Below, one piece after another: positions 1-31,136 of a DNA stretch of 64,000 bases (position 1 is the stretch's first letter; each line of letters starts with the position of its first letter). Location: NCBI GenBank assembly GCA_964036045.1, contig OZ038378.1, positions 77,934,001 to 77,998,000 of the forward strand, in the 5' to 3' direction. The DNA comes from Eutreptiella sp. 'Long Island Sound 2002' (lineage: Eukaryota; Protista; Euglenida). The position numbers and the translations under genes are program-made. The notes under the pieces were generated by a model. The model worked only from the letters and a program-made list of their open reading frames with translations. It searched no databases and was not told the DNA's origin.

Positions 1-5
1 GTGAG

Positions 6-5739: not shown

Positions 5740-6170
5740 TGTGTCCGTTGCCCAGGCTGTACCGATTAGACTCTTGTTTGATGAGGTGTAAGACGACGTG
5801 CTTTGGGAGGCGCCATAAAGCCAACCAGATGTGTAGGGCTTGGGTGCCCAGGCGGCAATCTGTTGCCTTGTGAAGGGGCTGTCGCGCCAGTTTGCGGACG
5901 ATCTGGAAGTCCACTGCTGCGTCTACTACGACCCACACATGGTGCCTGAGGTCCCGCGGCTCTTGCTGGGTGTCGTTGACGGCGTCCATGATGATGGCCA
6001 GCGTCTTTGTTCTCCGTAAGAGGAGGTCCCAAAGATGGTGGCCCCCGTGAGGTGGCGTTGGCGTAGTCGGCCCGCCGTGTCCATCCGTAGCTCCAAGGCT
6101 GCCCCCCCGGCCGCTGGGGTGAGGTTCCTGGTGCCGGAGGCATCCGCAAACATGATGGTGTTGCGGTCGT
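5740..6170 (-). pseudogene. Copy A RNase H domain
   Basis: FADASG...GGAA...GE(L)...VWVVVDAAVDFQ...HLIKQES...GNGHIDLHA matches RNase HI D-E-D-D spacing; frameshifted. Confidence 0.8.
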
Positions 6171-7649
6171 CGGGGCATGGCAGATGGCACGGCGCCGTCA
6201 GCTGGTAGGCGTGGTCCTGCGCCCGCTGCTCTGTGGTGGCCCATGGCGTGGTGGTGGACTGTTGGAGCCTTCAAGTAGCGTAGTTGCCTATTCCCTGGTG
6301 GATGATCTGGGTCCCTGCTGGGTTCATGCGTACATAGTCGTTGTTCCCTTCCTGGCCTTTCGTGAGATAGCCTTACACATACTGGACCAGGTACGCCTTC
6401 TGTTGGTGGAATGTGGTCCATTCGGTTGTCTGCCAGTCCTGGACTTGGGAGCAGTGCTGTTTAACCGGGTAGGCGGGGGCCTCCGGCGTGGTACTGCGGT
6501 GTTTGGCCAGCACCGAGAAGGTAATTGCTGGGTGTTTGGTGTCCCACGCTCCCAGCTGGAATCTCCATTCCGCAGTGGTGTTGAGTCCCCAAGCGACTAT
6601 GGCCGTGTCCTCCGCCGAAGCCTGTTCGAATTGTGTATGTAGCCACCGGTTTTGTTCCAGGGTGGCATGGGCCCCTGGTGTGTGGTGATAGCGTGCCAGC
6701 AGTTGGAGGAGGGGCCATGGGCTGGCCAGCGCTTGGGGCCCACATCTCCAGCAAGTGGTGGGGGTGCTTGTCAGCGCGTACCGTGGCAGTCGCGGCGGAC
6801 AGAAGTTGCGTTCCTTGGGCGGCGGTAGCATCAACAAGTTGCCGCGCGCCCTGCGAGGTCGCAATGTGGTTTTGAGTCTGTTGGGTGCCAGGAGGAGTAC
6901 TGCTGGGACCGTGGTGCCCGGTACATACTCCACTTGTTCTGGCGGTCAGTCGTTGGCTTGGTTCTCGCGGTAGCGTCTGTTTGTGCGGGCTGCAGAACAG
7001 ACCGTACGCCTCACGTACTTCCCCATCTGTTGGCTGTGGGTGTCCGCTTTGTGTGGCCGCGTTTTGCATGTGATTTTCCAGGACTGATTCGTTGTGCCAC
7101 TCCGGGTGGTGCAGGAAGGGGACATGGTGTGTGCCTACTCGTTGGAGGGCCCACATCTGGCTCGCTGTGACTGGTACTAGGTGTAGGGTGTTGCCCACAG
7201 GGTCCAGAGTGGTGGTGCTCCTCGTCGGTCCTGAACCCACATCGGTGTGTAGGATCGCCACAGGACCGGTCTCCCTGCGGGGATGGTTTGTTTGGATGAC
7301 ATATTGGTGGTGGGGTAGCAGGAGCTGTAGGTGGTTCCATATGCGGGTCCCTACCTTGGTGGGGAAGCCTCGTTGATGAAGTATCTACTGGGGACAGGTT
7401 TTGCGATGGTATTTGGCCTCTCGCAGTGTCAGCGTGAATACCTCCCTCACCTGCGGTTCATGGTTATGCATGAGGCGGTACAGGTGGGTCGCGGTGTGAG
7501 CCGTGCAAGCGTTGCGGACTACGTAATCGGTGTTGTCCCCATGGTATGGTGCTGACGCAGCGCACATCGCCGCGGGTAGTGACGTGGGTTGGTGGCCGTG
7601 GATGGCCCACGCCCGCCGTATCCTGGCAGCGGCCTCCTGCAGCATTTGT

Positions 7650-8760
7650 CGGGGATGCGTCAGGTGCAGGGCCTGGAACCCTATGGCTGCGTTGAGTATG
7701 GCTAGGAGGAAGTATGTATCTGGGTGGAGAGCGCCACGATGCGTACTATGACAAGTGTTGGCGTCAACTGCCGTAGCAGGTTGGGTGGTAGGGTGACCCT
7801 GTTCATGGTGGCCGCTTGTTGGACTCCCAGGTAGCTGGCTGTGCTTACTGGGTTCTTGGGCGGGTCTCCGGGGCAGAGGCGTGGCGGTAGTGCGCTGTGC
7901 CCCATGGTGGCAGATTCGACGTTGTGCACCAGTAGCTGGTTGCCCTCCAGATGGTTGGTGACATCATGGAGTACTTTGGTGGCCCTGACGGTGTCCGGCG
8001 TGGTAGGCAGGGGCTGGCGGGCGGTAGCGGTTACCACCGCAATGTCGTCCGCGAATGCTGGGAGCGTGGTCTGTAGGGGGTATGGTGCCAAGTCCGGGTA
8101 GGTGCGTCGGATCTAAAAGGCCAGCGGGAGGGTGACGAGCAGGAAGAGTAATTGGCCCTCCGCACCTCCCTGTCGGACCCCACTGGTGGGGGGGATCTGT
8201 GGGGTGGTGCCCACATCGGTTTTCACTGCATACATGCGGGTGGCAAGGTATGCTTGTAGGAAACCCTGAAAGGGGAGTCCCGTGCATTTCCAGACGGCTC
8301 GTAGGAGAGGGTGTCGGGTGTTGGGGAAGGCCCCCTCAACATCCAGGGACGTGATGATGAGGCTGATCGGGTCCATAACTACCACGGCGTCTTGCATAAA
8401 TATGGCCTCCAGCGGCGACCTACCCGGTATGGCTCCCCACATCGTGGGCCGTACAGCGCGGAATACTGCCGGGGCCACCTGTTTGAGGATGAGCATCCAG
8501 ATAAGTTCGGCTTCCGTGGTGGCGCACACTGTGGGTCTCCAGTTGTCTGGGTTCGCCCAGTCGCCTTTCATGTACAGCGGGTGTACCAGGTTTGCCCAAT
8601 CGGGTTGTACGTCTGTTTTCTCGATGGCAATATCCCATAGGTACACGGCCAAGTGTCTCTTTAGGTTCAGTGGGAGGCCGGGAGGCCATCTAACCCCGGG
8701 GTGCTTCCTGGTTGTAGTTTGTACAGTACTTCATCCAGTTCTGCAATGGTGAACGGGGTG
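7650..8760 (-). pseudogene. Copy A non-LTR reverse transcriptase
   Basis: PLYMKGDWANPDNWRP, SLDVEGAFP, GVRQGG and AFADDIAVV motifs (ORFs 8113-8652, 7702-8091). Confidence 0.92.
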
Positions 8761-9449
8761 CGGTGCATGTCTAGGAAGCTGTGTCCGGTTGTAGAGTTTT
8801 GGCAAATGCGATAAGAATTCCTCCGTGTACGCAGATAACTCCTTGTCCTCGGTATTGTGTCTGCGTTGGAAACAATTGAGGACCTTTTCGAGGACCACCT
8901 TGTGGTTGTTGGTCACTGTGCCATTTTACAGGCGCACCTCCTTGATGCCCCGGTGGCCGGTTTCCCCGAGGACTTTGTCCACGTGCTTTAAGGACTTGTG
9001 GGGCTTGGGAATCTGAAAGTAGCGTTGCTGTTCTTGTGCAAGCTCCTTCGCTCGGCGGACGTGCCACTCCCTGAGCTGCCGGCGTGTGGTGTCCAGTCGT
9101 GCGGCAGTTTTCTGGGCGTCTTGCTGGGCCTGTGGGTCATGAAAGTATATCGCTGTATGTAGTTCCCGTTTGTCGTGCCATATGGCGGTGACCATGTATC
9201 GCAGGTCGTTATGCGGAGTGGCATGGTCCTGTGTGTACCGGTGTCCCCTGTGGAGGTCACACGCCGTGGCCGCTTATTGCACGGCAAGGTTTAGCTCCGT
9301 GTTGTCTTGTTTGCCCAGGATGCGCTGCACTGTGCGGTAGTACGCTGTCCATCTGTGTGTGTCGTGTTCGTCTGGTGGCCTGATAGGTGGTTGTTGGTCA
9401 TGTTCCACGTCTTCCGTGGAGGCCGGGGGCACTTGAACCACCCTGATTC

Positions 9450-10150
9450 TCACCTCCAGAGGACGATGTCCAGTGATCTTGCATGGCAGGTTGTGGTATC
9501 GCGCCCGTGTTACCTCGACATGTGCCGGGTCTGCGTAGCAGAGGTCGATGCGGGAATCTGATGAGCCTGGTTGCGGTGGTCAGTGTGAGGGCTGGCCTCA
9601 TAGGGAGCCTGTGAGGTCCTGTAGGCCCATGTGTTTCCTGGCCATTTGCACCGCTGTGTCCTCGGGCGTTTGTCGCCCCCCACGATCGTCCATTGATGGG
9701 GCTGCGTTGAAGTCTCCTATGATGAGAGTCCGCCCCATTATGGCGAGTTGCTGGTAGGCCTCCATGAGGTGTTTGAGGAACGTCTCTGTGGCGTCTCCAA
9801 AGGGGACATGAACGTTTATGACGTTGAGCTGCGACATCGGGCCGACCAGTTTGTATGCTGCCAGGCGGCCGTCGACGCCCAGGTGGTGGTGGACATGACT
9901 CTGGACCTCACTCTTGTGGAATATGGGCACCCCCTTGACCCATATGGTGCAGTATTGGTGTCCTGTCCTAGCCAGGATGGGGGTGACCCTGGGCTGAGTC
10001 ACTACAGTTTTCAGGGCCTGTTCCTGCCACAACATGGCAACTGGTTCAGATCCCGCCATGACAGGTACGTCTTGCAGGTCCGGAGCTTTGGCTGCATCGT
10101 ACAGGACGCCTGGCTCGTTGAGGAACATGAGGGAGACGAGCGCATTGATG
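9450..10150 (-). pseudogene. Copy A apurinic-like (APE/EEP) endonuclease
   Basis: LWQE, NVINVHVP, IIGDFNA, SRIDLCY and TGHRPL motifs. Confidence 0.9.
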
Positions 10151-10399
10151 ACTTCGTGGGTGTGCGCCCTGGCGGTCCCTGGGGGTCCCCGTGCGCAGCG
10201 GGGTAGTAGTAATTGTCCCAGGTGTAGTTTGAGGTTGATCGCTGTCGTCACCCGTTGCTCCTCGGGAATACTTGGCTCCTCCAGCCATGCCTGTGGCACG
10301 TCATCTGTCCAGACAGTGCCCGGTGGCACTTTGTTGGTGGGCATGCGGAGCTCTACCAGGCACTTCTGGAACGGCCTGTCGCCCGAGAGTTCGAAGTTC

Positions 10400-13300
10400 T
10401 GTGTTTCCCGTTTCTCGTCCTACTCCGGGAGCGCTTGCCATGCAATCTTCGGCCGCAGGTTTCCATGTTGGCCTGGTGTGGCCAGTCTGCTCTTTATCCT
10501 GCCCCAGAACCATACGAACTGTTTCTGTCGTCCTTTGAGCGTGGCTCGTAATACCCCTTGTACTTCTGCGCTGTCTGCCCATTCGAGGTTCATGGCGTTA
10601 CGTTCCGCCACCGTGAAGAATCGGCATGCATGGGGCTTGGGCTTCGGCTGTGATTCCGGCGGCCGCGGCACTGGGACGGCTTTCGGTGCCGGCTTCGGTC
10701 TTTGGCCTGGCGGGCCGGGATGCCCGCCCCCTCAGGACGAGGCCGTGGCTTGGGTTGGGCTTGTTCTGCCGCCGGCTTAGGGGCTGGCTTTGGCGCCTTG
10801 CGGTAGTGGAAGTTATGGAAGATGCTGTAAGCCCGCCCTTGGCCCTCACGGGGTCGGTGCATACCTCAAAGTTTGTTCGCATGGTCTTGCAAGCTGGTGG
10901 TGCGATGTTTGAGACTTTGTTAGGTGTCCGTGGGCCAGGATATCCAGCGTTCCGCCTGTGATGTCCCGTGTTTGCGTACGTACGCTGCCAGGTTGCGAGT
11001 GAGATTGAGCCATGTCATGGGTATCGTGGTGTCTTTGATTGGGTCATCTACCGTTCAGTGCATAGGGCATAGGGCCAACCAGTGCGCCAGGGGGTGGTGT
11101 GGGTGGAGTGGCTAAAACCGTCCCCCAGTGCCAGTGGGGTTGCTGTTCTAGCTTCTGCTGTGACTCTGCCCGTTGTGCCTGTGGCATTCCACTGTGCGAC
11201 CCACCAGGTGTGTGGGAGGCACGTTAGTGTCACTGTGGGGGCGTTTGGGGGCCTGTGGAGGATTGTCCAGTCAGTGACCTTTGGACCTTCGTCCTTTCAA
11301 TTTTGTCGCTCTGGCGGGCTGGTTAGCTGCACCAAGTGGCCCACAAGGTCCAGCGTCAGGGTGTCTTCCCTTTCCTTCATGCTGTCCTTACGTTCCGTGG
11401 GGTGTTTCACGGCGTCCTTTCAAGCGTCCGTGGCGGCCGCCAGGGTGTTGGCTGCTGGGGTGATGACATCGTCCGTTAGGCCTTCCGCGATGAAGTGCTT
11501 TTCTGCCACCAGGGTGGCCGGGAGTTGGGCCGTGTGTTTCATGGTGACGTGTAGCAGCGCTCTGTCAGGGCCTGGGGCGTTTGGGTCCGCGGGCCTCGAG
11601 TCGCGTGCGCCGCGCCTTGCCACCGGGTGACGTGGTGTGTCGGTGTTGGAAAGTCGTGGTCCCATAGCCATGTGGTGCACCTGACCGAGGGGGATGGCTT
11701 GGTCCGTGGTGTCTCCCGCCGTAAATTACACTCCCTTGGTGCCTGCTACCATGTTGAGGTATATACCTGGGAGTGGGGCGGGCCGTGGGGGTAATGCTTG
11801 GAACAGCGCGTGGGGGCAAGGGTGCCCGCAGGGAGGGTCCCCGGGCCGGAGCCCTGGGCAGTGGACATCCATACGGTGCGGTACAGGGTATAGTATGTAG
11901 GGTCCGGCCACCCTGCGCAGTTTTTTGGGGTTCAGGCTGTTCAACCTTCCCCCTGCCCTGATGGTGACGGAGCCCTGGTTGAGCCAGGTGGCTTGGTCTC
12001 AGTCAATGTCGTGGTGCAGGGCCCTTCTGATCGTGCCCCACGTCCTGCGGTGGGTGGTGTCATCTGGCCTGGGGCATGCCCTATGGATGAGGGGCATCCT
12101 GGCGTTTGCGAGGGCGGACTTGATGATGTTTGGGGGCAGAATGCCGTGGGCACCGGTAGCATTCCTCCCCACGGTTCGGTGCCTTGACGGGGCACACGCC
12201 TCCCACGCCTCCCACGGTTGCTGCCAGGATGTGTCCGGACCCGAAATGGGGGCTGGCGGGTCCCCGTATCGTGCCCAGGTGTATACCGTGTATGCTGTAC
12301 CTTAGGTGTCGGCCACCAATCTGTATGTCGACGTCTGTGCTTCGCCGTAGGTGCCGATTATGTTTGAGGTGGGGTGTAGTGGAGGTGTGTGTGCGCCAGG
12401 GCGTGTGTGATTTGTGCCTCCTTGCCTTTCCGATTGTCCACGTGGTCCTCTAAGACGAAGTGTACCATCCACGGGCTCCGGGCTGAAGATTGCCGTCTTT
12501 GTCTCGTATTGCTGGGTGTATCTGGCGCCCTGTCTGCTGTGCTTTGTTGGCGTTGTGGGGGGCGCGTTGTTCGACGAGGATGTTTGGCGTCCAGTCCTGT
12601 GGGGCACCCTCCCTGTGCGCCATGGCTTGGGCTGCCTTGGCAAGGGCCGTGACGGTTAGCGGCAGTGTGGGTTCGTTGACCTGGGGCACCATGCCGGTGT
12701 CTGTATGGAAGTTCCAGTATGTCGAGAACGTCCCTGGATGGTCGGCGTTGTGGGTGTCTAAGAGGGCTAGGGAGAGTGCCTCCTTGATCTGGGTCACTGC
12801 CTCTGGGTGTATGGGGGTAGGGTAGTGCCAGAGGGGGTGCTTGGTGGCGCACTGGTGTGTACGGGCGTCGCGTCCCGCGGGCTCCATTGTCTGCGGCGTG
12901 CGGGTGTCGTCGAGGGTGATATCGTCGAGGCGGTGAACGTTGGCGGCCCACCGTGTCTGCCAGTCTGTCAGCGCGGGGTTGTTTTCGGCGCAGTCCAGGG
13001 TATAGTGGACAGCTGTCCACTCCGGGTCGGGGTCACGAGCAATGTCGGTGTTCGCTGTTGCGCGTACCCAGACAGCTTGTGTGGGTCGTGCCTGGGGTGT
13101 TTGGTCGTCCTTTCCAAGGGGTTTGCACTCGATTGTGGCCCTGCCCTGGGCAGTTATGAAAGGGCGCACGGGCTGTGGTAGTTGTACCCGGTCCGGCGTG
13201 ACGAGGGGCATGCCTTCATGGTTGTTACTCCCGGGACGATTTTCTTGCAGTCGATGTTGTTATGCTCCTGGTGTGGTTCCCCTCTCGGGGCAGTTGGTAG

Positions 13301-14784: not shown

Positions 14785-15510
14785 TGTTTTGGGCTCTATA
14801 CTCCGTGCGGTCCTGGCTTGGGGTACGCCGGCGCGGTGTGGTGCTTGTGGCTCCGTCGTGTAGTCCGTGCGTTGTCATGGGGTGTGGTCCTGTTCCGGGT
14901 CCAGTCGTCGCTGTGCTCTCTGCCCTCCCCTTGCCCTCTGCCAGTGGGGCCCGGTTGTGTTGGCTGTCCCGGGGCAGTGGTCGCTGTGCCATTGGCTCGC
15001 TTTATGGGTGGATCGGGGTTCTTCCCGCTGTGTGCTGTACACCGTGTAGGTGGGGCTTGCGGTGTATGCGTCTGGTGCTTGTCCTCGACCTCTATCGCTG
15101 GGGCTGTCGTGGTTGTTGGTGTCGCGCCGCGGTATGTGACTGTAGTCAGTGTTTTGGGTGCTTTACTCCGTGCGGTCCAGGCTTGGCGTACGCTAGCGTG
15201 ATGTGGTGCTTGCGGTTCGGTGTGTGGCGCAGGCGGTGTAGTCGGTACGTTGTGATGGGGTGTGGTCTGGTTTCGGGTCCACCAGTTGTCGTCTTGTAGT
15301 TCGCTCACCTGTCGTTCTCCCCCCTTGGGGCCCGGTTCTGTCGGTTGGTGCTGAGGTAATGGCCCGTGTGCCATTGGGTCGTTTTTCCCCGGTGTGCGCT
15401 GTAAACCGTGTGGGTGGGGCTTCTGATGTGTGCACCTGGTGCTTGTGCTCGGCTCCTGTCGCTTGGGCTGCCGAGGTCACCGGGGGCGGCTGGGTGTTGT
15501 CCCCCCTCTC
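14785..15510. repeat. Two tandem ~365 bp units
   Basis: CTCCGTGCGGTCC anchors at 14801 and 15166 with colinear flanks; a third unit anchored at 18002. Confidence 0.85.
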
Positions 15511-15929
15511 GGGTCATTGTTGTTGTCGGCGTGCTCGGCGGACGCGTTGTGGGGTCTTCCTGGGCGCCGTCCTGGCGCTCCTGCTCCATCATGTCCTGTG
15601 TTTGTGTTGCCTGTGTGGTCTTTCTTGTGCGCCATGTATTTGGGCGCTGTGGTGCTGCATGTGTGTGTACATCATGCTGCGTGTTGTTACATGTGCGTGT
15701 GTACCACATACGGGGCGGGCGGATGGCATACCTCTTGCCCCTGGCCTCGGCTTTGGCTTCGATGTCACGTGGGTTCTGCCCTTCCCCTGTAGTGGAGCTT
15801 GTTGGTCTCGGCGCTGTCCTTCCTTTGTGCTGCGCCACTTATTCCAGGCCTTGGGGCCGGTCTGCCATGTGGAACAGCTGTGGCACACAGGGTAGACGTA
15901 GGTGGTGCGCTGCATCGTGCCATGCCGTG

Positions 15930-17969: not shown

Positions 17970-18715
17970 ATGTGACTGTAGTTCCTGTTTTGGGTGCTAT
18001 ACTCCGTGCGGTCCAGGCTCGGGGTACGCTGGCCTGGTGTGGTACTTGCGGTTCGGTCTGCCGCGCGGGCGCTGTAGTCGGTACGTTGTGATGGGGCGTG
18101 GTCTGGTTCTGGGTCCTCCAGTTGTTGTTGTGCTGTTAGCTCCCCTGTTGCCCTCCCCCCTTCGTTTCCGGTTGTGTCGGCGGTGCTGGGGTAATGGCCC
18201 GTGTGCCATTGGGTCGTTGCATGGGCCGTTTGGGGCTCTCGCCGGTGTGCGCTGTACACCGTGAGGATGGGACTTCGGGTGTGTGAGCCTCGTGCTTGTC
18301 CTCGGCTCCTGTCGCCGGGGCTGCCGCGGTCGTTCGGGTCAGCCGGGTGTTGTCCCCCCTCCCCGATCGTAGTCGTTGTCGGTGTGCTCGGCGTAGGCGT
18401 TGCCGGTTCTCCGTGGGCACCGTCCTTGCGCTCCTGCTCCATCGTGTCCTATGTTTATGTTGGTGTTTCTTGTGCGCCTTGTACTTTGGCGCTGAGGTAC
18501 TGCATGTGCGTGTACCTCATGCTGCGTGTTGTTACATGTGCGTGTGTAATACCTATGGGGTAGCTGCGGTGCATATCTGCTGCCCTTGGCCTCCGCCTTG
18601 GCCTCGGTCTTGTCTGGGTTCTGCCCTTCCCCTGTAGTGGAGCTTGTTTGCCTCGGTGCTGTTCTTCCTTTGCGATGCGGCCCCTAATCCAGGCTTTGGG
18701 GCCTGTCTACCATGT
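17970..18715 (-). repeat. Diverged duplicate of 15134-15870 (LINE 5' region)
   Basis: Direct repeat from ATGTGACTGTAG to CCATGT; both copies translate MEQER(Q/K)DGA...TVYSAHR...TTQWHTGHY. Confidence 0.88.
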
Positions 18716-19234
18716 AAAATTGCGAACCGCTGCCGCGGCCCGAACCACAGCCAAAGCCAAAACCCCAGGCATGCCCATTCTTCACGGTTGCGGAAAGTAA
18801 CACCATGCAACCCAAATGGCCAGATGGCGCAGAAGTACAAGGGGAATTCGGAGCCACACTCGAAGGACGACAAAAACAGTTCGTATGGTTCCGGGGCAGA
18901 ATAAAGTGCAGAATGGCGAGCCTCAGGCCAACATGGAGACCTGCAGCTGAAGATCGCATGGTAAGCGCTCCTGGAGTGAGTGAGAAACCAGAAACTGAGA
19001 CCTTCGAACTCTGGGATGACAGGCCCGGTACAGCTCCGCAGGCCCAACAGCCAAGTGCCACGAGGCACCGTCTGGACCGGTGACGTGCCACGGGCATGGC
19101 TGGAGAAGCGGAATATACCCGAGGAGCAACGGGTGACGACAGGGATCAACCTCAAACCACGCCTGGGGCAATGACTACTACCCCGCCGCGCAAGGGGCCC
19201 CCCAGGGACCGCCAGGGTGCACACCCACGAGGTC

Positions 19235-19915
19235 ATCACCCTCATGTCCCTCAACGAACCAGGCGTCCTGTACGACGCAGCCAAAGGTCTGAACGTGCAA
19301 GACGGACCTGTCATGGCGGGATGTGACCCAGACGCCATGTTGTGGCAGGAACAGGCCCTCAAAACCCACGTGACCCTCCCCAGCCTCACCCCGATCCTCG
19401 CTAGGACAGGGCACCAAAACCGCACCACATGGGTCAAGGGTGACAAGACAAAAGTGAGGGCCAGGGTCATGTCCACCACCACCTGGGCGTCGAAGGCCGC
19501 CTGGCAGCATACGTACTGGTCGGCCCGACTCGGCAGCTAAAGGTCATAAACGTTTTTGTTCCCTTTGGAGACGCCACAGAGTGATTCCTTGAACACCTCA
19601 TGGAGGCCTACCGACGAATCGCCATGATGGGGTCAACTGTCATCATAGGAGACTTCAACGCAGCCCCATCAATGGACTTTCGTGGGGGGCGGCAAACGCC
19701 TAAGGACACAGCGGTGCAAATTGCCATGCAAAACAGGGGCCTACAGGACCTCACAGCCTCCCTATGAGGCCAGCCCTCACACCGACCCCCCCCTACCAGG
19801 CTCAACGGATTCCCGCATTGACCTCTGCTACGCAGACCCGGCACACATCGAGGTAACGCGGGCTGATGCCGCGACTTGCCACCCAAGGCCACTGGACATC
19901 GTCCCCTGGAGGTAC
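19235..19915 (+). pseudogene. Copy B APE endonuclease
   Basis: LWQEQ, IIGDFNAAP, SRIDLCY and TGHRPL motifs across frameshifts. Confidence 0.88.
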
Positions 19916-20058
19916 AAGTCAGGATGCTTCAAGTCCCCCCGGCCTCCACAAAAGAGGGTGACCATGACGAACAACCACCTATCAGGCGACCAGACGAACA
20001 GGATGCACACAGATGGACGGCGTAGGACCAGCAATACAAGAAGAACCTGAACCTCGCC

Positions 20059-21560
20059 ATGCAACAAGCGGCCACGGCATGTGGCCTCCACGGGGGAGAC
20101 CGGTACACACAGGACAATGCCACCCCGCATCAGGACCTGCGATCCATGGTCACCGCCTTATGGCGCAACAAACGGGAACTACATACAGCGATACACTCCC
20201 ATGACCAACAGGCCGGGCAAGATGCCGAGAACATTGCCGCACGAATGGACACCACACGCCGGCAGCTCAGGGAGTGGCACGTCTGCCGGGCGAAGGAGCT
20301 GGCACAAGAACAGCAACACTGCTCTCAGAACCCCAAGCCCTGTAAGTTCTTAAAACACGTGGACAAAGTCCTCGGGCAAACCGGCCAACGGGGTATCAAG
20401 GCGGTGCGTCTGCAGAACGGCACTATGACAAACGACCCCAAGGTGGTCCTGGAAGAAGTCCTCAACAGCTTGCAACGCCAACGGAATACCGAGGACGAGG
20501 AGTTATCTGCGTGCACGGAGGAATGGATATCGCATTTGCCAAAACTCTACAACCGGACACAGCGACGAGACACGCACCGCACCCCGTTCAGCATTTGGAA
20601 ACTGGATGAAGTACTGTACAAACTACAACCACGAAAAACCCTTGGGGTAGACGGCCTCGCAGCGGAGCTCTACTGCAGCCTCCCACTGTACCTGAAGTGG
20701 CACTTGGCCGCGTGCCCATGGGATATCGCCATCGGCAAAACAGACATACCACCGGATGAAGGAAACCTGGTACACCCGCTGTACAAGAAAGGCGACTGGG
20801 CGAACCCAGACCTTGGAAGACAAATAGTGTGCGCCACCAAGGAGGCCAAACTCATCTGGATGCTCATCCTCAAACGTGTGGCCCTGGCAGTATACCGCAC
20901 TGTACCGCCCATGATGTGGGGAGCCATACAGGGTAGGTCGCTGCTGGAGGCCATATTTATGCAAGACTCCGTGGTAGACATCGACCCGATCAGCCTCATC
21001 ATCACGTCCCTGGATGTCAAGGGGGCCTTCCCCAACACCTCGCACCGCCTCCTATGAGCCGTCTGGAAACGCCTGGTAGTCTCCTTTCCGGGTTTCCTAC
21101 ACGCATACCTTGCCACCGGCATGTATGCAGTGAAAACCTATGTGGGCACCAACCCATGGGTCCCTCCCACCAATGAAGTCCGGCAAGGGACTGTGAAGGG
21201 CCCATTTCTCTTCCTGCTCGTCACCCTCCAGCTGGCCTTTTACATCTGACGCACCTATCCGGACGTGGCACCATACCCCCTACTGACCACGCTCCTAGCC
21301 TTTCGACGACGACATGGCGGTGGTAGCCGCCAATGCCCGCCAGCCCTTTGCAACCACCCCGGACACCGCCAGGGCCAGCAAAGTACTCCATGATGTCATA
21401 AACTATTTGGAGGGCAATCTGGTACTGGTGCACAACTTCAAGTCTGCCACTTTGGTGCACAACGCACCACCGCCACCCCTCCGCCCTGGAGACCCGCCCA
21501 TGAACCCAGTAAGAACGGCCACCTACCTGGTAGTCGAACAAGCGGCCAGCAAGAACAAGG
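20059..21560 (+). pseudogene. Copy B linker plus non-LTR reverse transcriptase
   Basis: ORF 20059-21057 (KTLGVDG, PLYKKGDW, SLDVKGAFP); FADD region frameshifted at ~21300. Confidence 0.9.
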
Positions 21561-23199
21561 CCACCCTACCACCTAATCTGCTACAGCAGCTGACCCGAAC
21601 AGTTCTCATTGCACGCATCGTGGCGCTCTCCACCCAGGCCCTGGCATACTTCTCCAAAGGCGTACTCAACGCAGCCAAAGGGTTCCAAGCCCTGCACCTG
21701 AAGCAGCCCCAACAAATGCTGCAGAAGGCCGCTGCCACGGTACAGCAGGCGTGGGCCATCCACGGCCAGCGACGCACGTCACTACCCGCTGCGATGCATG
21801 CTGCGTCACAACCATACTATGGAGACAACACCGATCACCTAGTCCGCAACCCGTACAGGGCTCACACCGCGACCCGCCTGCACCGCCTCCTGCACAACGA
21901 TGAGCAGGACGTGAGGGAAGTATTCACGCTGACACTGCGAGAGGCCCAATATCATTGCAACACCTGTCCCCAGTACATACTTCATGAAAGAGGCCTCCCC
22001 ACCATGGTAGGGACCTGCATATGGAACCAATTACAGCTCCTGCTACCCCATCACCAACATGTCATCCAAACAAACCATCGGTGCAGGGAAACAGGTCCTG
22101 TGGCGATCCTACACACCGATTTGGGTGGTGGACTGACGGGGAGCACCACCACTCTGGACCTGGTGGGTACCACCGTACACCTAGTACGAGTCACACCGAA
22201 CCAGATGCGGGCCCTCCAGCGAGTAGGCACATACCATGTTGCCTTCCTGCAGCACCCAGACTGGTTCAACAAATCAGCCCTGGAAAATCACATGCGAACC
22301 GCGGCCAGACAAACTGGACATTCACAGCCAACCGATGGGGAGGTATGTGAGGTGTACGGTCTGTTTTGGAGCACACACAAACAGCCACAACCGCGAGCCC
22401 CACCGCGCAGGAACCAAGCCCACAACCAACCAATGGAACAGGTGGACTATGCACCGGGCTCCACGGTTCCGGCAGTACTCCTCCTGGCACCCGACCGACT
22501 CAAAACCACATTGCGACCTGCACGGCAACTTGTGGATGCTACCGCCGCCCACAGAACGCAACTTCTGCCCGCCGTCACTGCCACTAGACGCGCCGACAGG
22601 CAGCCCCACCACTTGCTGGAGATGTGGGCCCCAAGCGCTGGCCATTCCATGGCCCCTCCTCCAACTGCTGGCACACTATCACCACACACCAACGGCCGAA
22701 GCTACCCCGGAACGGCACCGATTGCTACATACACACTTCGACCAGGCTTGGGCGGGGGACGCGGCCACTACGGCCTGGGGACCAAACACCACAGCGGAAA
22801 GGAAATTCCACCGTGGAGTGTCGGACACAACACATCCGGCCATTACCTTCCCGGTGCTGGCCAAACACCGCAGTACCACGCCAGAGGCCCCCTCCTCCCC
22901 GGTTAAACACCACTGCTACCAAGTCCAGGACCGGCAGACAATCGAATGGACCACATTTCACCCACAGAAGGCGTACCTGGTCCAATATGTGTGCGTCTAT
23001 CTCACGCAAGGCCACGAAGGGAACAAGGACTATGTAGAAATGATCCCAGCAGCGACCGAGATCATCGACCAGGGAATAGGTGTCTACGCTACCCGAAGGG
23101 TCCAACGAGCCACCACTTTGCCATGGGCCACCACAAAGCAGGGGGTGCAAGTCCACGCCTACCAGCCAAAGGCGCCGTGCCGTCTGCTACCCCAAGATG

Positions 23200-24456
23200 A
23201 CCGCTACACCGTCATCTTTGCGGATGCCTCCGGCACAACGAAGATCACCCCAGTGGCCGGGGGGGCAGCCTCCGAGCTGCGGACGGACACGGCTGGCCAA
23301 CTACGCCAACACCACCTCACGGGCGCCACCATGTTCGGGGCCTCCTCTCACGGAGAACTGAGGAAGCTGGCGATCATCGTGGACGCCATCAATGACACCC
23401 ACCAACAGCCGGAGGACCACACGCACCATCTGTAGGTCGCAGTAGACGCAGCAGTGGACTTCCAGATCGTCCGAAAACTGGCCCGACAGCCCCTACACAA
23501 GGCAACGGACTGCAGCCTGGGCACACAAGCCCTACACCTCTGGGTGGCTTTACGGCACATCCCGAAGCAAGTCATCTTACACCTCATCAAACAAGGGTCC
23601 CATCGGTACAGCCTGGGCAACGGACACATAGACTTACACGCCCACAACCAGCTTGCAGAACATGTGCCAGACGACAAAGACCCTCCGCTGCAAGACCACA
23701 TGCACACACACGTCCAACACCTGCCACCGATCGCACCACCCGGGGAACCAACGGCCTGGGTACCAGACGACCGGATCTCCAACGACACAGGACACGTGTA
23801 CCACTACCCACAACCCATCCGCGCCATGGCGCACATCCGAGGGGACCACGCCGACAACGCCCTTATGAATTGCCTCCAACATGAACTGCAGACCGCGTTA
23901 TACTTCTCAGCTCTTGATCCGTCCTTGCCACCGGTAGACCTACAAACACGACGTGCCCAGCTCCTACTTGAACAACTGCCCCTCCTGGACAGGATGGCAC
24001 GCGTGTATGACCGACGAGGGTATAGACATACCCCCGGAATACACCATATGCCCCTGCCACCTCCAACAGCCAGAGACGTGGGAACACTTCAAACAGTGCC
24101 CGCTGGCTCAGGGAGGCAACCCCCTGGCCACGTGGAAACCGGAGAACACAATTGCACAACACGCCAGATGGGGCCCAACCGCGCCGCCGGCAAAGAAAGT
24201 CCGGCGCCTGATGCGGCAACCAGAAATCAAGGAGGCAGTGCTCAGGGGGCTCCATCTCTACAGGGTAATCGCCGACCACGCCCCGGAACCCAAAACCACA
24301 GTACGTCACATGCAACTCACCGCCGTCAAGAGGGCAGATGCACAGCTGCAGCACCGCGTCCAGCTGTACACACAGGTAGCACAACAGACCTGTCAGGCTG
24401 ACCGTGTGTATTACAACCTCCTCATCCATTACCAGCCAGCGCAATCCAGCGAATAG
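23200..24456 (+). pseudogene. Copy B RNase H plus C-terminal Cys/His finger; pol stop TAG at 24454-24456
   Basis: IFADASG...HGELRKL...VDAAVD...GNGHIDLHA; CPCHLQQPETWEHFKQC. Confidence 0.85.
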
Positions 24457-24589
24457 CCACACCCACTGACACACGGCAACCCCCGGGGGACTGCCACCGC
24501 ACCACCCACCACACTGCACTGCACAAAAGCGCGCACACTCCCAAAAGGTGACTCGATTGTCCCACGACCTGCACCTCTCCTCAGGACGC

Positions 24590-27500
24590 CCGCCGGTGAA
24601 GCCCCACATCCGCAGGGACCAGGGAACCTGTGCAACGTCTGCTAGGAAAGAGTCGGGGACGACGACACCCCGCGCCTTGGGCATGACCTCCGGCTGCGGC
24701 AGCGCCGAAACGATGCACCGGTTCTTCAGCCAGTGCATCGCCCAGCTGCATGCCTGCCCACTTTGCAGACGGGCGCACCCCCTCTGCACAGCCCCGCCGC
24801 CGCGAGAAACCCAACCGACGACCTCACACTCCACACGCTGCGCAGGCTGATTGCCCAGAACGTCTTGGCACCCCCCGATGCTGACCGAGGGGACAGCCCC
24901 GACAGTACGTGGCTGGATGTCCTCGGCAAGAAGGACCTGGCGGCACCGCCGGCCCGCCCCCCCTGGCGCACCAACGTGGATGCTGCTGGACGGGGAGGAA
25001 GACCCCAAGGTCTGAGTTGAGACCACGAACATTACGGGGGTGTGCAACGGGGCAGCCTGCCCCCCGTCGGCAATCTGCCGGACAGTTGGGGCCCCATGGG
25101 CCCCATGAACCTTGAAAAGTGGGGCGCTACCATCCTCACCCTTACCACCCGCCTCCCCTTCACCTTCTGCTGGCTGCCGAGGGACGCGGAATGGGCCATT
25201 GGGATCGCTCGCGGCGCCCATGTCCATGAGTGGGGGGAGTTTTTCTGCAGCAGCGGGGGCATGACCGAGGGGGCACCCGAGAGGCTGATGGCAGCCTATC
25301 TAACGTTGAGGGGGATACCGGTCCCCGAAAGACTCGTGCCAGTGGCGCGTCGCGCCCGCCAACCACTCGTCCCAGCGCCGCAGCCGGGCACGTACGGCAA
25401 TGCAGCAGTGGCTCGAATGACGGCCGGGGGTGTTCGACACCACAGTTCCTCCACCTCCACCCCGAGAGTCGCGACCATCAGCACCCAGCCCTGGCCGCGC
25501 ACCACGGCCGCAACGAGGCCCAAAAGTGTACACGCTCCGGCGCCACCTACAGCGGTGGGAAGCATGCCCAGCCACACGAATATGGCAACAACAAGCGCGC
25601 GGCCCGAGCAACCCCTCGGCACCATGCGCCCACAAATGAGCCTAGGCCCGGGCCCCGCCGGCGACCCGGGTCCACAACCTCAAACGCGAACCAACGCGTC
25701 CACACGCGGCCAGCAGCCAGCGGCCCCGACACAGGCCGACCCGGGGCTTGACCCCCACCACAACCCACCAGTTCGACCGACGGCAAGCCCCACACAAACT
25801 CCATCTGACGGCCCCCCCACGCAAACACCAAGACCGACCTCCACACAGACGCGTACCGCTACCCCGCCATACGCCACCATGCGCCCCCATGCCCACATCC
25901 CCACCGGGTGACCGAGTGCCCAGGCTCCAGCGGCACCGTGCAAGTCGACCCAAGGGTACCATCCACCAGCCCCAGCGCAGGCCGAACCGGCGCCCCATCA
26001 ACGCCAAGACCCACCGGCCAGACCGGCAGTACGGCCCACGGAAGCGCCGCCTGGCAGTCCCCCGGCCCCCACCAGGACCCGGACCCGGACCCGGCGCGCG
26101 CCACCGTCCCGGCCTACGCCCTGCAGGCGAACACGCCAGGCCACAGGCTCACGACGGTGGTCCCGCATCCCGAGGGCGGGACACCGGCAGCTCGGCCCGC
26201 CACGGCGGAGGGGAGTGGTGGAACGCGAACACTGGCAGGCCAAAAGGGAAGCCCCCCGAGGCCGGCACCCGTACGAGTTGGCCAAACCCGTGCGGCGACG
26301 CCAACAAAAGACGGCGCAGCCACGCCACCAGCACTGCCAGCCCAGCCACATCACTAGGAGCCCACAGTGGACACGGGTGCTGGGGCATCGGAGGATGCGG
26401 AGGGACGCCCTCAGTGGAAAAAGGCAGCGGTGCCAGCGCCGACCTATACACCCGGGGACCGCCCAGAGCGGAGATACCTGGCGCGATGACGGGCAAGCCG
26501 GGCAGCCAGCACGCCAGCAAGCCAGCCAATCACCAGCCGGACATGATGGCACGTGAAAGCAACGAAGCACCAGACACTGCCCAACCCGGTACGGGACCTG
26601 GGGGACCGACGCCGGGGGCCAGGCATGACGACGACCCCCCCCCCTCTGCCCGTGCACGAGGCGCAGACCACGGGTCATGCAGGTGCCGTTCCATCCACGG
26701 CCCCAGCAAGCCGCAGTGACACGAGCACGCAAGGGGATGCAACGTCCGGGGAGGCACGGACCCAGGGCCCACCTCAAGCGCACGCGGAGTGCAACACCCG
26801 GGTGACGTCTCCGGACACACCCAAGCGCGCAACTGACCGGGGGCCGTCGTCCGGCAGACACAACCGCAACAACGACTCTTTCGACGCCTCCATGGCGTCC
26901 TGCAGGAGCGCCCGCCCAAACAAACCCAGCGCCGACTGCTTCATGCAGCCACCTGAAGCCACGGGGCGACCATACAGAGCCTGCACAGGAACCCCCGAGG
27001 GATTCCCTCGCGGAGTCCCGGCAGGCACACCTCCAGCGCGGTTACACCGCCCTGGGGGTGAGGACTGAATACACCGTTGCCACGGATGACGCGCACGCGA
27101 CCGCAAGCGAGCTAGCGGACAAGACCCCGGACGAGCCCCCCTGGCACCTCGCCCAAGGGAGCGGAACGTGTGTGGAGACGGGTACCAACACCGCTAGCGA
27201 GCCTGCCGGCCAGCCACCGCGGGCCACCCCAGCCTGGGGGCGGGGGTATCTGGACTACGCGCGGTCGGAAGGCAGCGCCCGCCGCCCCAACACCCACGCG
27301 GAACAGGCGGCGGCCCAAGGGCTGGACCTCTGGATCACCAGGATCACCGTAGGGGAGCGGCACGCCCTCGGAGTCAGCATCCGACGTTTGTCTCAGGAGC
27401 TACTCCGCCTCCAGGATGGAATCTGCACCATGGCAGACGTTGCCTTCGGCCATTGGGCAGCACCGCACACAACCCCGACCGCCATGGACCACCCTAGTCG

Positions 27501-30072
27501 GTGGCACTATGTGGCCTCGCGGCTCATGGCACATATGCGGACCTATGGCGCAGATGAAATGAACAGTCTACACTGGCGCCCGCATGAACGCGCGGCACTC
27601 CGCGTCCGTGCAACCATGCAAAGGCACAACATCTGGGCCATCCCAGGGTCCCCGGGCTCCCCGGGACACGCCTTCGGACACAGGCGACCACGGTACCAAG
27701 AGGTGCCGGAGCCCTCAAGGCAAATGGCACGCCATGACTCCCCAAGACGCCACCAGGGGCCACCTCCCGGTGTGGATTCCCCCTCCAGCACACACGGAAG
27801 CCCCCTCAGACCATTCGCACCTCGGTGGGACCGAGGCAGCCCTCATGCCACGGGGATGAAGGGTGGGACCTCCGCCTTGCGGACCCCAGACCGGCGAGAA
27901 GAAGCGAGGAACCCTGGCCGATTCCGGCGCCGCAGCCGCACGCCACCCCCCGCGGCGCGGCGAGTCGTCTTCCACGAGGGTGCCGTGGAGGCCTCAACGA
28001 CCCGCCTGCCAAACAGACATCACCTACCGCTGATGCCCGGCGCCGGTCCTAGAGGGCCCGCACCGAGCAGACGCACATCCCCACCGTTCCCACGCCGGCC
28101 CAGCGAGCGCGATAGGCAGCGCTCCACAGGTGCCTCCACCAGGCAACAGACGGTGCATCCAGCTCGTCCGTTGCCTCCCTCCCAGCAGCACCGGCAAGTC
28201 CGCCACCGGGGGGATGGCACACAGCGGAGGCACGGCCAAGGGGACCAGCAGCAGACCAGCAACCCAGACACAGGATGGGGGCAAGGACATATCAAAGCCT
28301 CCCCCCCCCGCACCGGCCCACCGACCAACCGGTCCAATGCGCAACGGGGCTCCGCACCCTGGCTGTGACGCAGCCAAGTTGGGGGGACGCGGAGGACGCA
28401 CCACAACAGCGGGGACGCGACGCAGGCGACCCGGGAGCGGGCCAAGAAATGACAGAGGCCTCCGGCCCTCAGGAGTCCGGTGGCCCCCGGCCCACCACCG
28501 TCTCCCATCCGATGTCCCCGCAACAAGAGCCCTCCACAGGCAGCGTACCTGAGGAACACCCTGACACCACTGCAGGGCACCCCTGTCCAAATGGCGGCAC
28601 ACCGGACGGGGACAAGGAGACCATGCCCCCCCCACCCTCCAGACCACTACAACGGAGGGACACAGACCGCCTTTACAGGGAGGAACTGAAGGAAATCTAC
28701 GACATCCACGCCAACACACCCCTGTGCGGGCTGGTGGCCGCCCCCTGGAGACGCCTCCAGGACATCAACCCAAACAGCCTCTTTGCCCCCGTCCTCGTGC
28801 CGCACGCCGGATCGACCAACATCTCCGTGCGGCAGCTCGTGGCACTCGTCACCCCCGGGATGCAGCTCGCAGACGACCTCGTCGACGCGTGGATCTGGTG
28901 GTTCAACTTCAACAAACCGGACCAGGAACACGTGTGGGTCCCGCACCTGGGCTGGGTGCACACACACATTGCGCCGCCGACAGAGCCCAGGCCCGCGCCA
29001 AGCACCGGGGGCCGGGAACTGGCCGCCCGACAACCGAGGGCTAACGCCCCCAACATCCCACCGTACAATGGTCTGGCGGGCCAGAAAAGCAGGTCTGCCC
29101 CCGACAGGGGGCGCAACCTCAGGGACATGGTGGAGGGATACCCACCAGGGGCGGAGACGGCACCCGCGGGACTCCCAGGACGCGAAGATGAGGCCCGCAC
29201 CATCTCCATGATTGTGTTGGAATGTGGCCACTATCACCAGGTGTGGATCACCCGGGACCCACAGGAGTGCCAGTGGAACCTGGAAGCCTTCGACTCCATG
29301 CACCCAGCAAGCGCAGCCCTGCCGGACGGCCCCAACCCCCTGCCGCAAAACCAGCCCCCGGACCCCCTGACGGCTGTCGTGTCGGGTGAAGCCGGCAGCT
29401 GGCACCCAGGGCATGCCCTCTACCGCCTCTGGCGTTCAGTTCAGCGCCGCTGCTCGCACACCAAGGAGTGGTCGGCGACGTGGAGATTCCACCTGGACGG
29501 CCGCGAGCAACTGGAGGCCATCCCCCAACGCGAGCGAACGACGGAGAGCCCTTGCTACAGGAAACCTGTGCCCCGTCTTAGCAATCCACCAGATCCGGGC
29601 ACTGGTGCTGGGCGGACAACTGCTGCCCACCATCGGCATTGAGACGGAAGCCCGAGCAGCGCACACAGCCCTTGTGCACGAGATCATCAGCGCTCTCGGC
29701 AGCGCCCTTGTGCGGCGTCTGGGGAACCACCCAGGGGCCTATCCCACCACGAGCCTAAACCGGGAACACGCCCCCATGAACATGCGAGGCGACACCATCG
29801 CCACCAGCGCACCAACACGGCACACGCATGCCTTGCCCGCTGCGACCGGCCACCGGCAGTGGAAGGGAACCACACCGGCGGCTATCCGCACCCTCCCCCC
29901 TTCAGTCGCGGCGATCGGCCGGAGGACCCTCGAAGAACCGGAGATGCACTGCGACCGATATGAGACGACACACCGCGGCGCAACTGTAGCACGGTCCCCA
30001 CGCCGACCACCCGCTGATGAGGAGACAACCAGGCACCATTGGGACCGCCTCACCCCACCCGAGGCTCCCTAG
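24590..30072 (+). pseudogene. Copy B ORF3: RING-like finger (24631-24769), unknown domains, Ulp1/C48-like protease (28821-29640)
   Basis: ORFs 24733-25020, 25042-25911, 27058-28368, 28275-29642 and 29386-30072; conserved with copy A; His/Asp/Gln/Cys protease residues recoverable. Confidence 0.78.
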
Positions 30073-31110
30073 TTGGGCGTCAAACGAGCGGCTGAGGGAC
30101 CAGCCATAAGCCGCAACGACCCCGGGCAGGCCAACCATGCCCAGGGCAGCGCATCCCGCCGACAACTGTTGATCGGGTGCACCGGCGAGAGATACAATGG
30201 GTTACCCGACTTCTGCCGCAGGCGCCCGCCAATGCGGCCCTACAACCCGTGCTCTACAGCATGGACACTAACCCGATGACCACACCGAGCCCATTCCACC
30301 CACGTATCACGGACGGGAACCACGCTCCCCACCCCCTCGAAATCCATCAGTGTCAAGGAACGGGAAGGAGCCCCCGACACAGACCCATCTTTCCACCTGA
30401 CCGCCATTTCTCACAAGCCAGACACGAGGTGGACCAAGGAGTGCAGCCCAACACACGAGACCCAAGGGCCCGCCGGCCCCCGCCGGCGGACACCGGAATA
30501 TTACGCCGAGCCCCTTTGGGATTCCCCGACGTCAGAGCACATAATCCTCAAGAATGTTACTTCGAAGGGCAGGGGGTCAAGGGAACACCAGAGGCGACAC
30601 GCATGACCTCCACCATTACCTTACCATTACGCAACAAACCAACTAAAATTGACAGACTGCACCGAACCCCCGGCCCCCCGGGAGAGCGCAAGCCCAACCA
30701 AGTCAGGAGGCGTGAGCACGCGTCACAGCATGTGAGTCCCGTAGCACGTGCTTCTTCAAGTCATCTCACGCCTACTGAAAACCAATCCAGTCGGGGGTGC
30801 CTGCAGGGCAGGGCCTTTGACCTAGCTCCGGGCCCCTGGGCCCCAGAATGGGGAGGTTGATGAGGATATGCGATTGGACCCTCCCCCACGTATCATCCGC
30901 CCGAAGGAGAGGAATGTGAGACTTCGGTTGAACATGGGTTACCTCTCTGGGCAGAACCCGCAGTAGGGTACTGCTCGCGGCGACCGCGCGCTTCCTCCAT
31001 GTGGGGGACCCGTTTTCTGGGGGCACGTGAAGTAGGGCCGTGGGTGGGTGAGCAAAAGCCCCTTGGTAAGACCCCCCTGAGGGGCAACCCCAGTCCCGAG
31101 AAGACCTATC

Positions 31111-31134
31111 TACCTACCTACCTACCTACCTACC
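31111..31134 (+). repeat. (TACC)6 microsatellite tail marking the LINE 3' end
   Basis: Directly visible. The homologous stub at 62626-63020 also terminates in (TACC)3 at the same point. Confidence 0.9.
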
Positions 31135-31136
31135 TC

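Follow-up and report, generated by a model that had tools for sequence, protein, structure and literature searches.

The last open reading frame of a giant euglenid LINE encodes a selected protein that may be a very divergent Ulp1-type protease

We describe a LINE family in which the last ORF is a real and separate gene, evolves under purifying selection, and is widespread in one euglenid genome. The window analysed here, a 64-kb stretch of euglenid DNA, carries a decayed example of it. With modest confidence, we read positions 28449–29742 (forward strand) as the pseudogenised last ORF of a ~12.4-kb LINE, whose domain would be a very divergent thiol protease of the Ulp1/clan-CE type. The C48 identity itself is not established; it rests on a weak resemblance, which no formal test confirmed. 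The protein is ~427 aa long in intact relatives, and has a domain of ~350 aa behind a proline-rich N-terminus. An initial annotation of the window had placed an Ulp1/SENP-like unit at 28821–29640, at the very 3′ end of the LINE. The unit is in fact the whole ORF, from the ATG at 28449 to the stop position at 29740–29742, and ~1.4 kb of 3′ untranslated region separates it from the tail of the element.

Three copies of the family lie in the window. Copy B (18731–31135, forward strand, ~12.4 kb) is apparently full length and decayed; its start is where its self-BLAST match with copy A begins, and its 3′ end was set by homology with two family copies, L001 and L003, and with the third copy in the window. 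The 3′ untranslated region of copy B (29743–31109, forward strand), in which and just beyond which 30657–31123 matches L001 and L003 at 89–91%, terminates in a (CTAC)n microsatellite tail that is read directly from the sequence (31110–31135, forward strand). Copy A (1–10670, reverse strand) is inverted relative to B and 82–84% identical to it by self-BLAST, and its 3′ part is cut off by the start of the window. The third copy is a 3′ end fragment (62625–62993, reverse strand) terminating in (TACC)3. A depth spike at 28965–29050 raised the possibility of another repeat, which was rejected, as this segment occurs in the window only in copies A and B.

In copy A, a remnant of an APE-type endonuclease (9601–10344, reverse strand) is weakly matched by Pfam Exo_endo_phos (E=0.014) and by the LINE-1 endonuclease of the PDB (E=0.03). 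By correspondence with copy A, its equivalent in copy B is located at about 19057–19800 (forward strand). The reverse transcriptase remnant of copy A (8116–8652, reverse strand) matches Pfam RVT_1 at E=4.1e-6 and 27.1 bits, below the gathering score, and in copy B an ORF at 20059–21054 (forward strand) contains the start of the RT domain (RVT_1, E=0.062). The RT ORFs are broken, and the APE and RT matches, which follow each other on one strand, are weak but collinear. Meanwhile, family copies are dispersed over many contigs, and L001 and L003 are truncated at the 5′ side, beginning at the equivalents of window positions 27747 and 22018, respectively. The order of APE before RT, the dispersed copies, the 5′ truncation, the simple-repeat tail and the lack of LTRs identify the element as an APE-type non-LTR retrotransposon. 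Pfam gave no match of any kind in the 7 kb after the RT, either in the window or in better-preserved copies, and RLE, RNase H and SET were not detected; an RLE as second endonuclease and an RNase H behind the RT characterise the Dualen/RandI clade. Because even the RT is barely seen by Pfam, the element lineage is generally very divergent, and the lack of an RLE or RNase H match therefore proves little.

The last ORF starts within AAATGAC (28446–28452, forward strand), in which the TGA stop of the upstream ORF overlaps the ATG. This ATGA is shared by copy B, L001 and L003, and the frame upstream of it is open for 640 codons in L003. Since the last ORF has its own ATG and stop and overlaps the upstream ORF in this way, its product is a protein in its own right and does not form the end of the pol protein. 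The suggestion that the protease processed its own polyprotein is thus worded for an arrangement that the element does not have.

In copy B, the candidate His, Asp and Gln codons are in the frame of the ORF at 28275–29642, and the Cys codon TGC is in the +1 frame, in the ORF at 29386–30072. Alignment with copy A and intact copies locates the +1 frameshift at 29540–29560 (forward strand). The Gln and Cys codons are 42 nt apart in intact relatives, 43 nt in B and 41 nt in A, which makes A 2 nt shorter than B; the initial annotation had rightly described B as 1 nt long and A as 1 nt short. Contigs from three public sequencing runs of two studies cover 29416–29653 or 29523–29634 with no differences or gaps, which shows that the frameshift in B was not introduced by the assembly. 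The stop position of B reads TAT at 29740–29742, where copy A keeps TAA. Copy B is dead, with one frameshift and its stop lost. The last ORF of copy A (6–1276, reverse strand), in a region that corresponds to the reverse strand of window 1–1361 and is 83% identical to B, is more decayed: its ATG has become ATC, several indels are present, and the candidate His is changed to Pro, while the natural TAA is found at 8–6. The ancestor had an open frame, as had been proposed from the repaired consensus, because many natural intact copies exist.

The reality of the gene is evidenced by these intact copies. At least 21 intact relatives of 420–432 aa are present in one euglenid assembly; a word search found 191 relatives, and exhaustive HMMER found 185. 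The 21 intact ORFs share both ends, starting with M-T-E-T and finishing with GNPPGP-stop, and their start and stop are still the same at a DNA divergence of 20–25%. Between copies, dN/dS is 0.22–0.62, with an excess of changes at third positions. In a HMMER search of 1.84 billion protein representatives, the best 150 matches contained the family alone, and a JGI metagenome scan together with exhaustive HMMER returned the family itself or nothing. In these scans the family is confined to one assembly, and consequently no deeper alignment could be built.

All four candidate catalytic residues of the initial annotation, along with the peptides it quoted, are found in the sequence of copy B on the forward strand. 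The candidate His codon is at 29229–29231 (CAC in B and, as annotated, CCC in copy A), the candidate Asp codon at 29292–29294 (GAC, in ..AFDSM), the Gln proposed for the oxyanion hole at 29526–29528 (CAA), and the candidate Cys codon at 29569–29571 (TGC, in NLCPV). An N-terminal motif block, VRQL.AL......DDLVDAWIWWFN (28821–28905, forward strand), is the proposed equivalent of the C48 ‘WLND..I’ helix, and in the hhalign block placement it falls on that helix in the C48 profile, though the score is poor (P=0.8).

The His, Asp and Cys pattern is not confined to copy B. Among ORF fragments of the family, His is retained in 154 of 174 (89%), Asp in 134 of 168 (80%) and Cys in 102 of 118 (86%). The candidate His is invariant in 7/7 divergent lineages, the three residues persist in subfamilies only 35–50% identical, and nucleotide conservation peaks locally at the His/Asp and Cys segments. 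Many other columns are conserved as well as or better than these three, which rank 112 (His), 85 (Asp) and 58 (Cys) of 348 columns among divergent fragments. The strongest conservation is in a proline-rich segment, which the C48 model treats as an insertion. From His to Asp there are 21 residues, from Asp to Cys 92, and from His to Cys 113; in Ulp1, Asp and Cys are ~50 residues apart. C48 proteases typically have the D-S-M that follows the His hairpin here. The Gln proposed for the oxyanion hole is misplaced: in C48 this Gln precedes the Cys by ~6 residues, and here the spacing is 14 residues, with no other Gln nearby. Moreover, many intact ORFs have another residue in its place or lack it, including 7/21 with a two-residue deletion.

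Formal tests of C48 identity were negative. With window pieces, 36 intact relatives and 10 sub-pieces as queries and E values up to 10 allowed, Pfam gave no match to PF02902 or any other clan CE model, so the proposed PF02902 check failed. NCBIfam returned nothing, PDB searches with profiles A1 and A4 found no protease match, and HMMER with its filters off scored ~0 bits. Against a verified and diverse 14-member C48 alignment, hhalign gave P=0.19, which is not significant; the controls were detected by the same profile, ElaD at P=9e-4 and left-out members at 1e-9 to 1e-17. A direct hhalign comparison with E. coli ElaD gave nothing, and cutting out the family-specific insertions brought no improvement. 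The Cys helix alone was aligned, without significance, both with the rhizobial NopD-like alignment and with the 14-member one. Whenever hhalign was run against real C48 proteins, its best local alignment put the candidate Cys helix opposite the helix of the catalytic Cys. When placed as blocks by hhalign, the four motifs fall collinearly on their cognate C48 motifs, and within-block shuffles equal the score and place in 6, 2, 1 and 0 of 60 trials. An unbiased tiling with a chain permutation test was not significant, as 32/100 shuffles attain the real score.

On the basis of language-model features, a search of the ESM Atlas with P0010:80-427 returned C48 clusters first, at 0.95, with 185/256 features and 24/30 matches. 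C48 is the family that the initial annotation had predicted independently, before this search. The same search with a second family member, P0116 (52% identical), gave noise. PF02902 is present in only 16–23% of members of the matched clusters, which are thus borderline C48 relatives. AlphaFold2 produced poor models, with a pLDDT of 32 and pTM of 0.19 from 38 sequences, and a pLDDT of 54 and pTM of 0.31 from 108 sequences. In their secondary structure the His lies on a hairpin and the Cys is closely followed by a helix, an order of elements compatible with clan CE. Fold searches with the better model, itself poor, gave noise only (Foldseek PDB, VIA-align wide and Atlas shape). We notice that profile methods favour another His, in ESHW, for the HW motif, which indicates that the motifs can be loosely threaded. 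A threading with this His as ‘HW’ and LPD as the Asp was rejected, because several divergent subfamilies have Arg in place of that His, and the residue following it is not conserved.

That there is no gene, and that the open frame is a by-product of stop-poor DNA of 67% G+C, is suggested by the long ORFs in all six frames of the region, including a 255-aa antisense ORF. However, start and stop are the same in the 21 or more copies, dN/dS is well below 1 with changes mostly at third positions, and the stop/start overlap is conserved. The intact ORFs, the ATGA overlap and the dN/dS refute this explanation for practical purposes, and we give it next to no credence. A more serious, though somewhat unlikely, explanation is that the last ORF encodes a selected LINE accessory protein with a lineage-specific fold, for example a nucleic-acid- or chromatin-binding factor, and that its likeness to C48 is a chance pattern in a long, compositionally biased sequence. 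It would account for homology tests that were all negative while their controls worked, for a language-model match that was not reproducible, for motifs threadable in more than one way, for a dispensable Gln, for top conservation outside the proposed motifs, and for a family that has no distant relatives beyond its one assembly. The PDB search also gave a SAP-like similarity of the N-terminus to Ku70, which is not significant (E=0.28), and Pfam SAP is absent from the N-terminal pieces. Chance is harder to reconcile with the Atlas result: a first match of 0.95 by chance is stated at ~1/100, and 24/30 matches on exactly the family predicted beforehand is much less likely still. In addition, the Cys-helix and His-hairpin blocks beat their own shuffles at the cognate places, and the triad persists across the divergent subfamilies.

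We regard it as quite improbable that the domain belongs to a thiol enzyme superfamily other than C48 in which His precedes Cys, for instance the PPPDE/DeSI (C97) isopeptidases or the permuted NlpC/P60-LRAT enzymes of the ‘H-box/NC’ type. There is a loose likeness to the ‘H-box’ and ‘NC’ motifs in the conserved G-H-Y-Y-x-V strand and in the N-x-C-P-x-F helix, and the 113-residue His–Cys spacing without a canonical Gln fits such enzymes no worse than C48. Yet Pfam has models for those families and none matched at E up to 10, the sole family-level signal, from the language model, points to C48, and the conserved D-S-M is of the C48 kind. We slightly favour the divergent Ulp1/clan-CE reading; in keeping with it, Ulp1-like proteases are known from other LINEs (PMC4640811, PMC5029228), and the element lineage is so divergent that Pfam barely sees its RT. 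As for the ancestral active cysteine protease of the initial annotation, the coding unit, the selection and the kept His, Asp and Cys speak for it, while a significant C48 match and a usable fold were not obtained.

If this Ulp1-type reading is right, the domain would carry its His on a β-hairpin, the Asp 21 residues further on, and the Cys at the opening of a helix, with lineage-specific insertions between them. Translation probably begins at the ATG overlapping the upstream stop, by reinitiation or related coupling. The product may act in trans to trim the very long polyprotein encoded upstream, or it may take SUMO/ubiquitin-like modifiers off proteins of the host or the element, helping the element to escape silencing. 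A bolder proposal, which we consider unlikely, is that the element carries, in addition to pol, ~7 kb of selected coding sequence in which no domain is recognisable, ending in a separately translated thiol isopeptidase, of a new clan-CE family or a new fold, that strips SUMO/ubiquitin-like marks against host silencing; it would be a LINE-encoded anti-silencing enzyme. A 12-kb euglenid LINE family with a selected last ORF and many intact natural copies is a tractable case for the roles of accessory proteins, with polyprotein processing and interference with SUMO/ubiquitin-dependent silencing as the candidates. The family is also an example of the amount of ‘dark’ coding sequence in euglenid repeats; in the Euglena gracilis genome, a third is unclassified repeat (PMC11252322).

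The family can be compared with several known systems. LINEs normally carry a nucleic-acid chaperone and pol only, and extra enzymes, such as esterases and proteases of the Ulp1, OTU or Josephin type, are rare. Among DNA transposons, plant MULEs bear Ulp1 domains. Ginger DNA transposons are reported to have a transposon-borne Ulp1-like protease (PMC2836005). The Ginger and MULE domains belong to another element class and pass Pfam, unlike the euglenid candidate. In nematodes, the non-LTR retrotransposons NeSL and Utopia-1_TSP have an Ulp1-like cysteine protease domain, presumed to process the element protein (PMC4640811). These are likewise LINE-borne domains described as Ulp1-like. However, they are N-terminal in a single ORF of RLE LINEs and alignable with cellular Ulp1, whereas the euglenid candidate is a separate 3′-terminal ORF of an APE-type LINE and is unrecognised by Pfam.

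The cryptophyte Dualen-1_GCr encodes a 5287-aa protein with SET, C48 peptidase, APE, RT, RNase H, CCHC and RLE (PMC5029228). It is also a giant protist LINE with a C48 peptidase among its extra domains, but there the peptidase lies upstream of APE inside one polyprotein and a second (RLE) endonuclease is present, while the euglenid LINE has no detectable RLE, RNase H or SET. Dualen LINEs of Chlamydomonas have a Josephin-related cysteine protease (PMC9977147), again a thiol protease of the deubiquitinase type carried by a LINE, of another protease clan and in another LINE clade. Compared with cellular Ulp1/SENP and bacterial C48 proteins (ElaD, rhizobial NopD-like, chlamydial), the euglenid domain has no significant profile match, is ~350 aa instead of ~200, has a Gln–Cys spacing of 14 instead of 6, and has ‘HY’ in place of ‘HW’. 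It has in common with them the His-Asp-Cys order, D-S-M/L after the His hairpin, a Cys that opens a hydrophobic helix, and an N-terminal acidic helix.

The ORF under study is the last one of a giant LINE with APE and RT domains, which lies in the window as two inverted copies of 82–84% identity. Copy B (plus strand) spans 18731 to about 31135 and copy A (minus strand) 10670 to 1, their 5′ ends facing each other across an 8-kb spacer. Within this spacer, 18000–18715 and 15164–15870 form a direct repeat, about 720 bases long with 80% identity. A third copy on the minus strand (62625–62993) comprises the last 370 bases only. The element ends about 1.4 kb past the last ORF, and its tail is a tetranucleotide, (CTAC)n/(TACC)n, not poly(A) (31110–31135 and 62625–62640). 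RVT_1 is matched at E=4.1e-6 in copy A and E=0.062 in copy B; in copy A, weak matches to an APE-type endonuclease (E=0.014) and the L1 endonuclease in PDB (E=0.03) are collinear with it. Other copies are 5′-truncated, and the five relatives that we looked up are all in one assembly. Between RT and the last ORF, the coding-looking sequence (21300–28400, about 7 kb) matches Pfam in no copy, the better-preserved ones included; the sole hint there, not significant, is a RING-type match (zf-C3HC4, E=0.76) at 7049–8587 of the related locus L002. Adjoining a divergent copy, we notice a host gene for an Xaa-Pro aminopeptidase (M24; L005:14389–16948), whose nearest proteins are euglenid (Eutreptiella, 63%; Rhabdomonas; Euglena).

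Alignment with intact relatives places the last ORF of copy B at 28449 (ATG) to 29740–29742 on the plus strand; the stop position reads TAT in B, and TAA is retained in A. A word search returned 191 relatives, each located on a megabase contig of an ENA assembly and lacking any Pfam domain. No family member appeared in a metagenome scan. Intact ORFs of 420–432 aa, with the common start M-T-E-T and the common end GNPPGP-stop, make up 21 of these relatives. In copy B (28446–28452) and the related loci L001 and L003 (around 10001), the ATG shares bases with the TGA that ends a long upstream ORF (ATGA), and the upstream frame in L003 is open for 640 codons. This overlap in three copies suggests termination-reinitiation or translational coupling between the LINE ORFs. 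Pairwise dN/dS among copies is 0.22–0.62, from pairs that include subfamilies only 35–50% identical in protein, and the changes are mostly at third positions. Given the shared start and stop, the ATGA overlap and these dN/dS values, the ORF is a genuine gene of the element with boundaries of its own. It is not an artefact of GC-rich sequence, nor is it just the C-terminal end of pol.

The initial annotation had assigned 28821–29640 to a Ulp1/SENP (C48)-like protease, and its sequence reading is borne out, with all the named codons present. In copy B, the candidate His (29229), Asp (29292) and Gln (29526) codons are in frame of the 28275–29642 ORF, and the candidate Cys codon (29569) is in the +1 frame relative to it. 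The loss of His in copy A is confirmed by CCC at this codon. The frameshifts described before Cys are also found: the Gln-to-Cys distance is 42 nt in intact relatives, 43 in B and 41 in A, the stretch being 2 nt shorter in A than in B. Contigs from three public sequencing runs (two studies) agree fully with B across both the frameshift and the His/Asp zones, and the frameshift in B is therefore real. The window copy of the ORF is a pseudogene; queries for all searches and folds were either pieces of the window itself or intact relatives that occur naturally, taken unrepaired.

Family fragments retain His in 154/174, Asp in 134/168 and Cys in 102/118 cases, and DNA conservation peaks locally at the His/Asp and Cys segments. 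Among divergent fragments, the three columns rank 112, 85 and 58 of 348 and are not outstanding. The best-conserved stretch of the ORF at the DNA level is proline-rich (28897–29050, ..HTLIAPPT.PRPAPSTGG.., mean pairwise identity 0.84–0.87), an insertion under a C48 model. Contig word depth in two runs shows a 10–50 fold spike at 28965–29050; within the window, this sequence is present only in copies A and B. The proposed oxyanion Gln, 14 residues ahead of Cys, does not hold up, being absent from 7 of the 21 intact ORFs through a two-residue deletion. Separately, we observe an N-terminal two-helix segment (E-L-R-A-L-Y-G-I-H......E-L-V-A-A-L-R-E-H-L; 28668–28790, about residues 78–105 of the intact protein P0010), which has a weak similarity to the SAP DNA-binding motif in Ku70 (PDB 1jjr, E=0.28). 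Pfam SAP was not found in it; its pLDDT is 72–76 in the second AlphaFold model, where only the C-terminal helix is higher.

The C48 assignment gained no match from Pfam: neither PF02902 nor another protease family appeared at E up to 10 in window pieces, 36 intact relatives or ten motif-centred sub-pieces. The NCBIfam search was empty, and family profiles found nothing significant among PDB sequences. An exhaustive HMMER search over 1.84 billion representatives gave 185 proteins, the best 150 of which are all fragments of the LINE ORF family.

Natural C48 genes were gathered from bacterial genomes and viral contigs with a DNA pattern for QQxNGxDCG and checked by Pfam (reference seed 2e-10; E. 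coli ElaD 2.7e-32). Two of the 'viral' IMG/VR contigs, L009 and L011, encode proteins sharing an identical C-terminal stretch, about 95 residues long; the L011 protein has 1057 aa. This stretch is a NopD-like C48 isopeptidase of rhizobial type (PF02902, 2e-10), 85–93% identical to Bradyrhizobium proteins, and the contigs look like bacterial symbiosis-island DNA, not virus.

The C48 profile was built from 14 diverse members (Chlamydiales, Rickettsiales, Wolbachia, rhizobia and others). It recovers left-out members at 96–99% probability; for a Wolbachia protein the probability is 37%, and for ElaD 23% (P=9e-4). The LINE family gives P=0.19 in hhalign with just 16 columns aligned. Excision of family-specific insertions brought no improvement. 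With every filter off, HMMER scores the LINE family at ~0 bits, and reversed or shuffled sequences at about −2.4. The best single local alignment in each hhalign run matches the candidate Cys helix (N-L-C-P-V-F-A-I) to the catalytic Cys helix (D-C-G-V-F-V). Four blocks, picked with the hypothesis in mind (N-terminal helix, His hairpin, pre-Gln segment and Cys helix), each fall on the cognate C48 motif and are collinear; within-block shuffles equal both score and place in 6, 2, 1 and 0 of 60 trials, respectively. An unbiased tiling of the whole domain does not reach significance in its collinear-chain score, which 32 of 100 shuffles match. Profile methods favor a second His (E-S-H-W) as the 'HW' motif. 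This residue is Arg in several divergent subfamilies, where the originally proposed His is invariant, and we rejected it; the preference shows that such motifs can be threaded loosely.

The ESM Atlas feature search with residues 80–427 of P0010 ranked PF02902-bearing clusters first (score 0.95, 185/256 features, 24/30 hits). By the calibration of this tool, a chance top hit of 0.95 occurs about once in 100, and this one coincides with the family that had been proposed in advance. Repeated with P0116, a member with 52% identity, the search yielded noise alone (0.82). AlphaFold2 on the family reached pLDDT 32 with 38 sequences and 54 with 108, and Foldseek, VIA-align and Atlas shape search of the better model returned no meaningful match. 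In these low-pLDDT models, His is predicted in a hairpin and a helix directly follows Cys, as in Ulp1.

For an unknown LINE accessory ORF, the prior probability of being Ulp1-like is low, yet not negligible. Ulp1-like domains are known in NeSL and Utopia LINEs (PMC4640811), and Ulp1-like/C48 domains in cryptophyte Dualen LINEs (PMC5029228). The agreement of the motif reading with one language-model search raises this probability substantially, and the failure of Pfam, hhalign, the replicate Atlas search and Gln lowers it again. Since Pfam hardly picks up even the RT of the element, an accessory domain that evolves fast could well escape detection. We slightly favor a divergent Ulp1/clan-CE-type protease as the product of the last ORF, as far as sequence can tell.

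A protein that is under selection but has an unrelated or unknown fold is a weaker but serious candidate, compatible with the dN/dS values and the empty profile searches; the Atlas ranking and the placement of the Cys-helix and His-hairpin blocks point instead to C48. We consider another thiol enzyme with His before Cys rather improbable beside the same C48 ranking. A spurious ORF is very improbable given the shared start and stop.

Because the ORF has its own ATG, overlapping the upstream stop, reinitiation or similar coupling probably yields the putative Ulp1-like product as a protein of its own. It may act in trans, its target being either the very long polyprotein encoded upstream or SUMO/ubiquitin-like conjugates. 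Repeats of Euglena gracilis are largely unclassified (PMC11252322); the Dam-methylase-bearing LTR elements neighboring in the window agree with those described for this species. Together with the M24 gene of euglenid type, these elements mark the host as a euglenid, probably Euglena or a close relative. In the literature searched, we found no description of a separate 3′-terminal ORF of this kind in a euglenid APE-type LINE. Ulp1-like proteases are already known in LINEs; if the protease reading holds, what is new here is their occurrence as a separate 3′-terminal ORF in a euglenid APE-type LINE.
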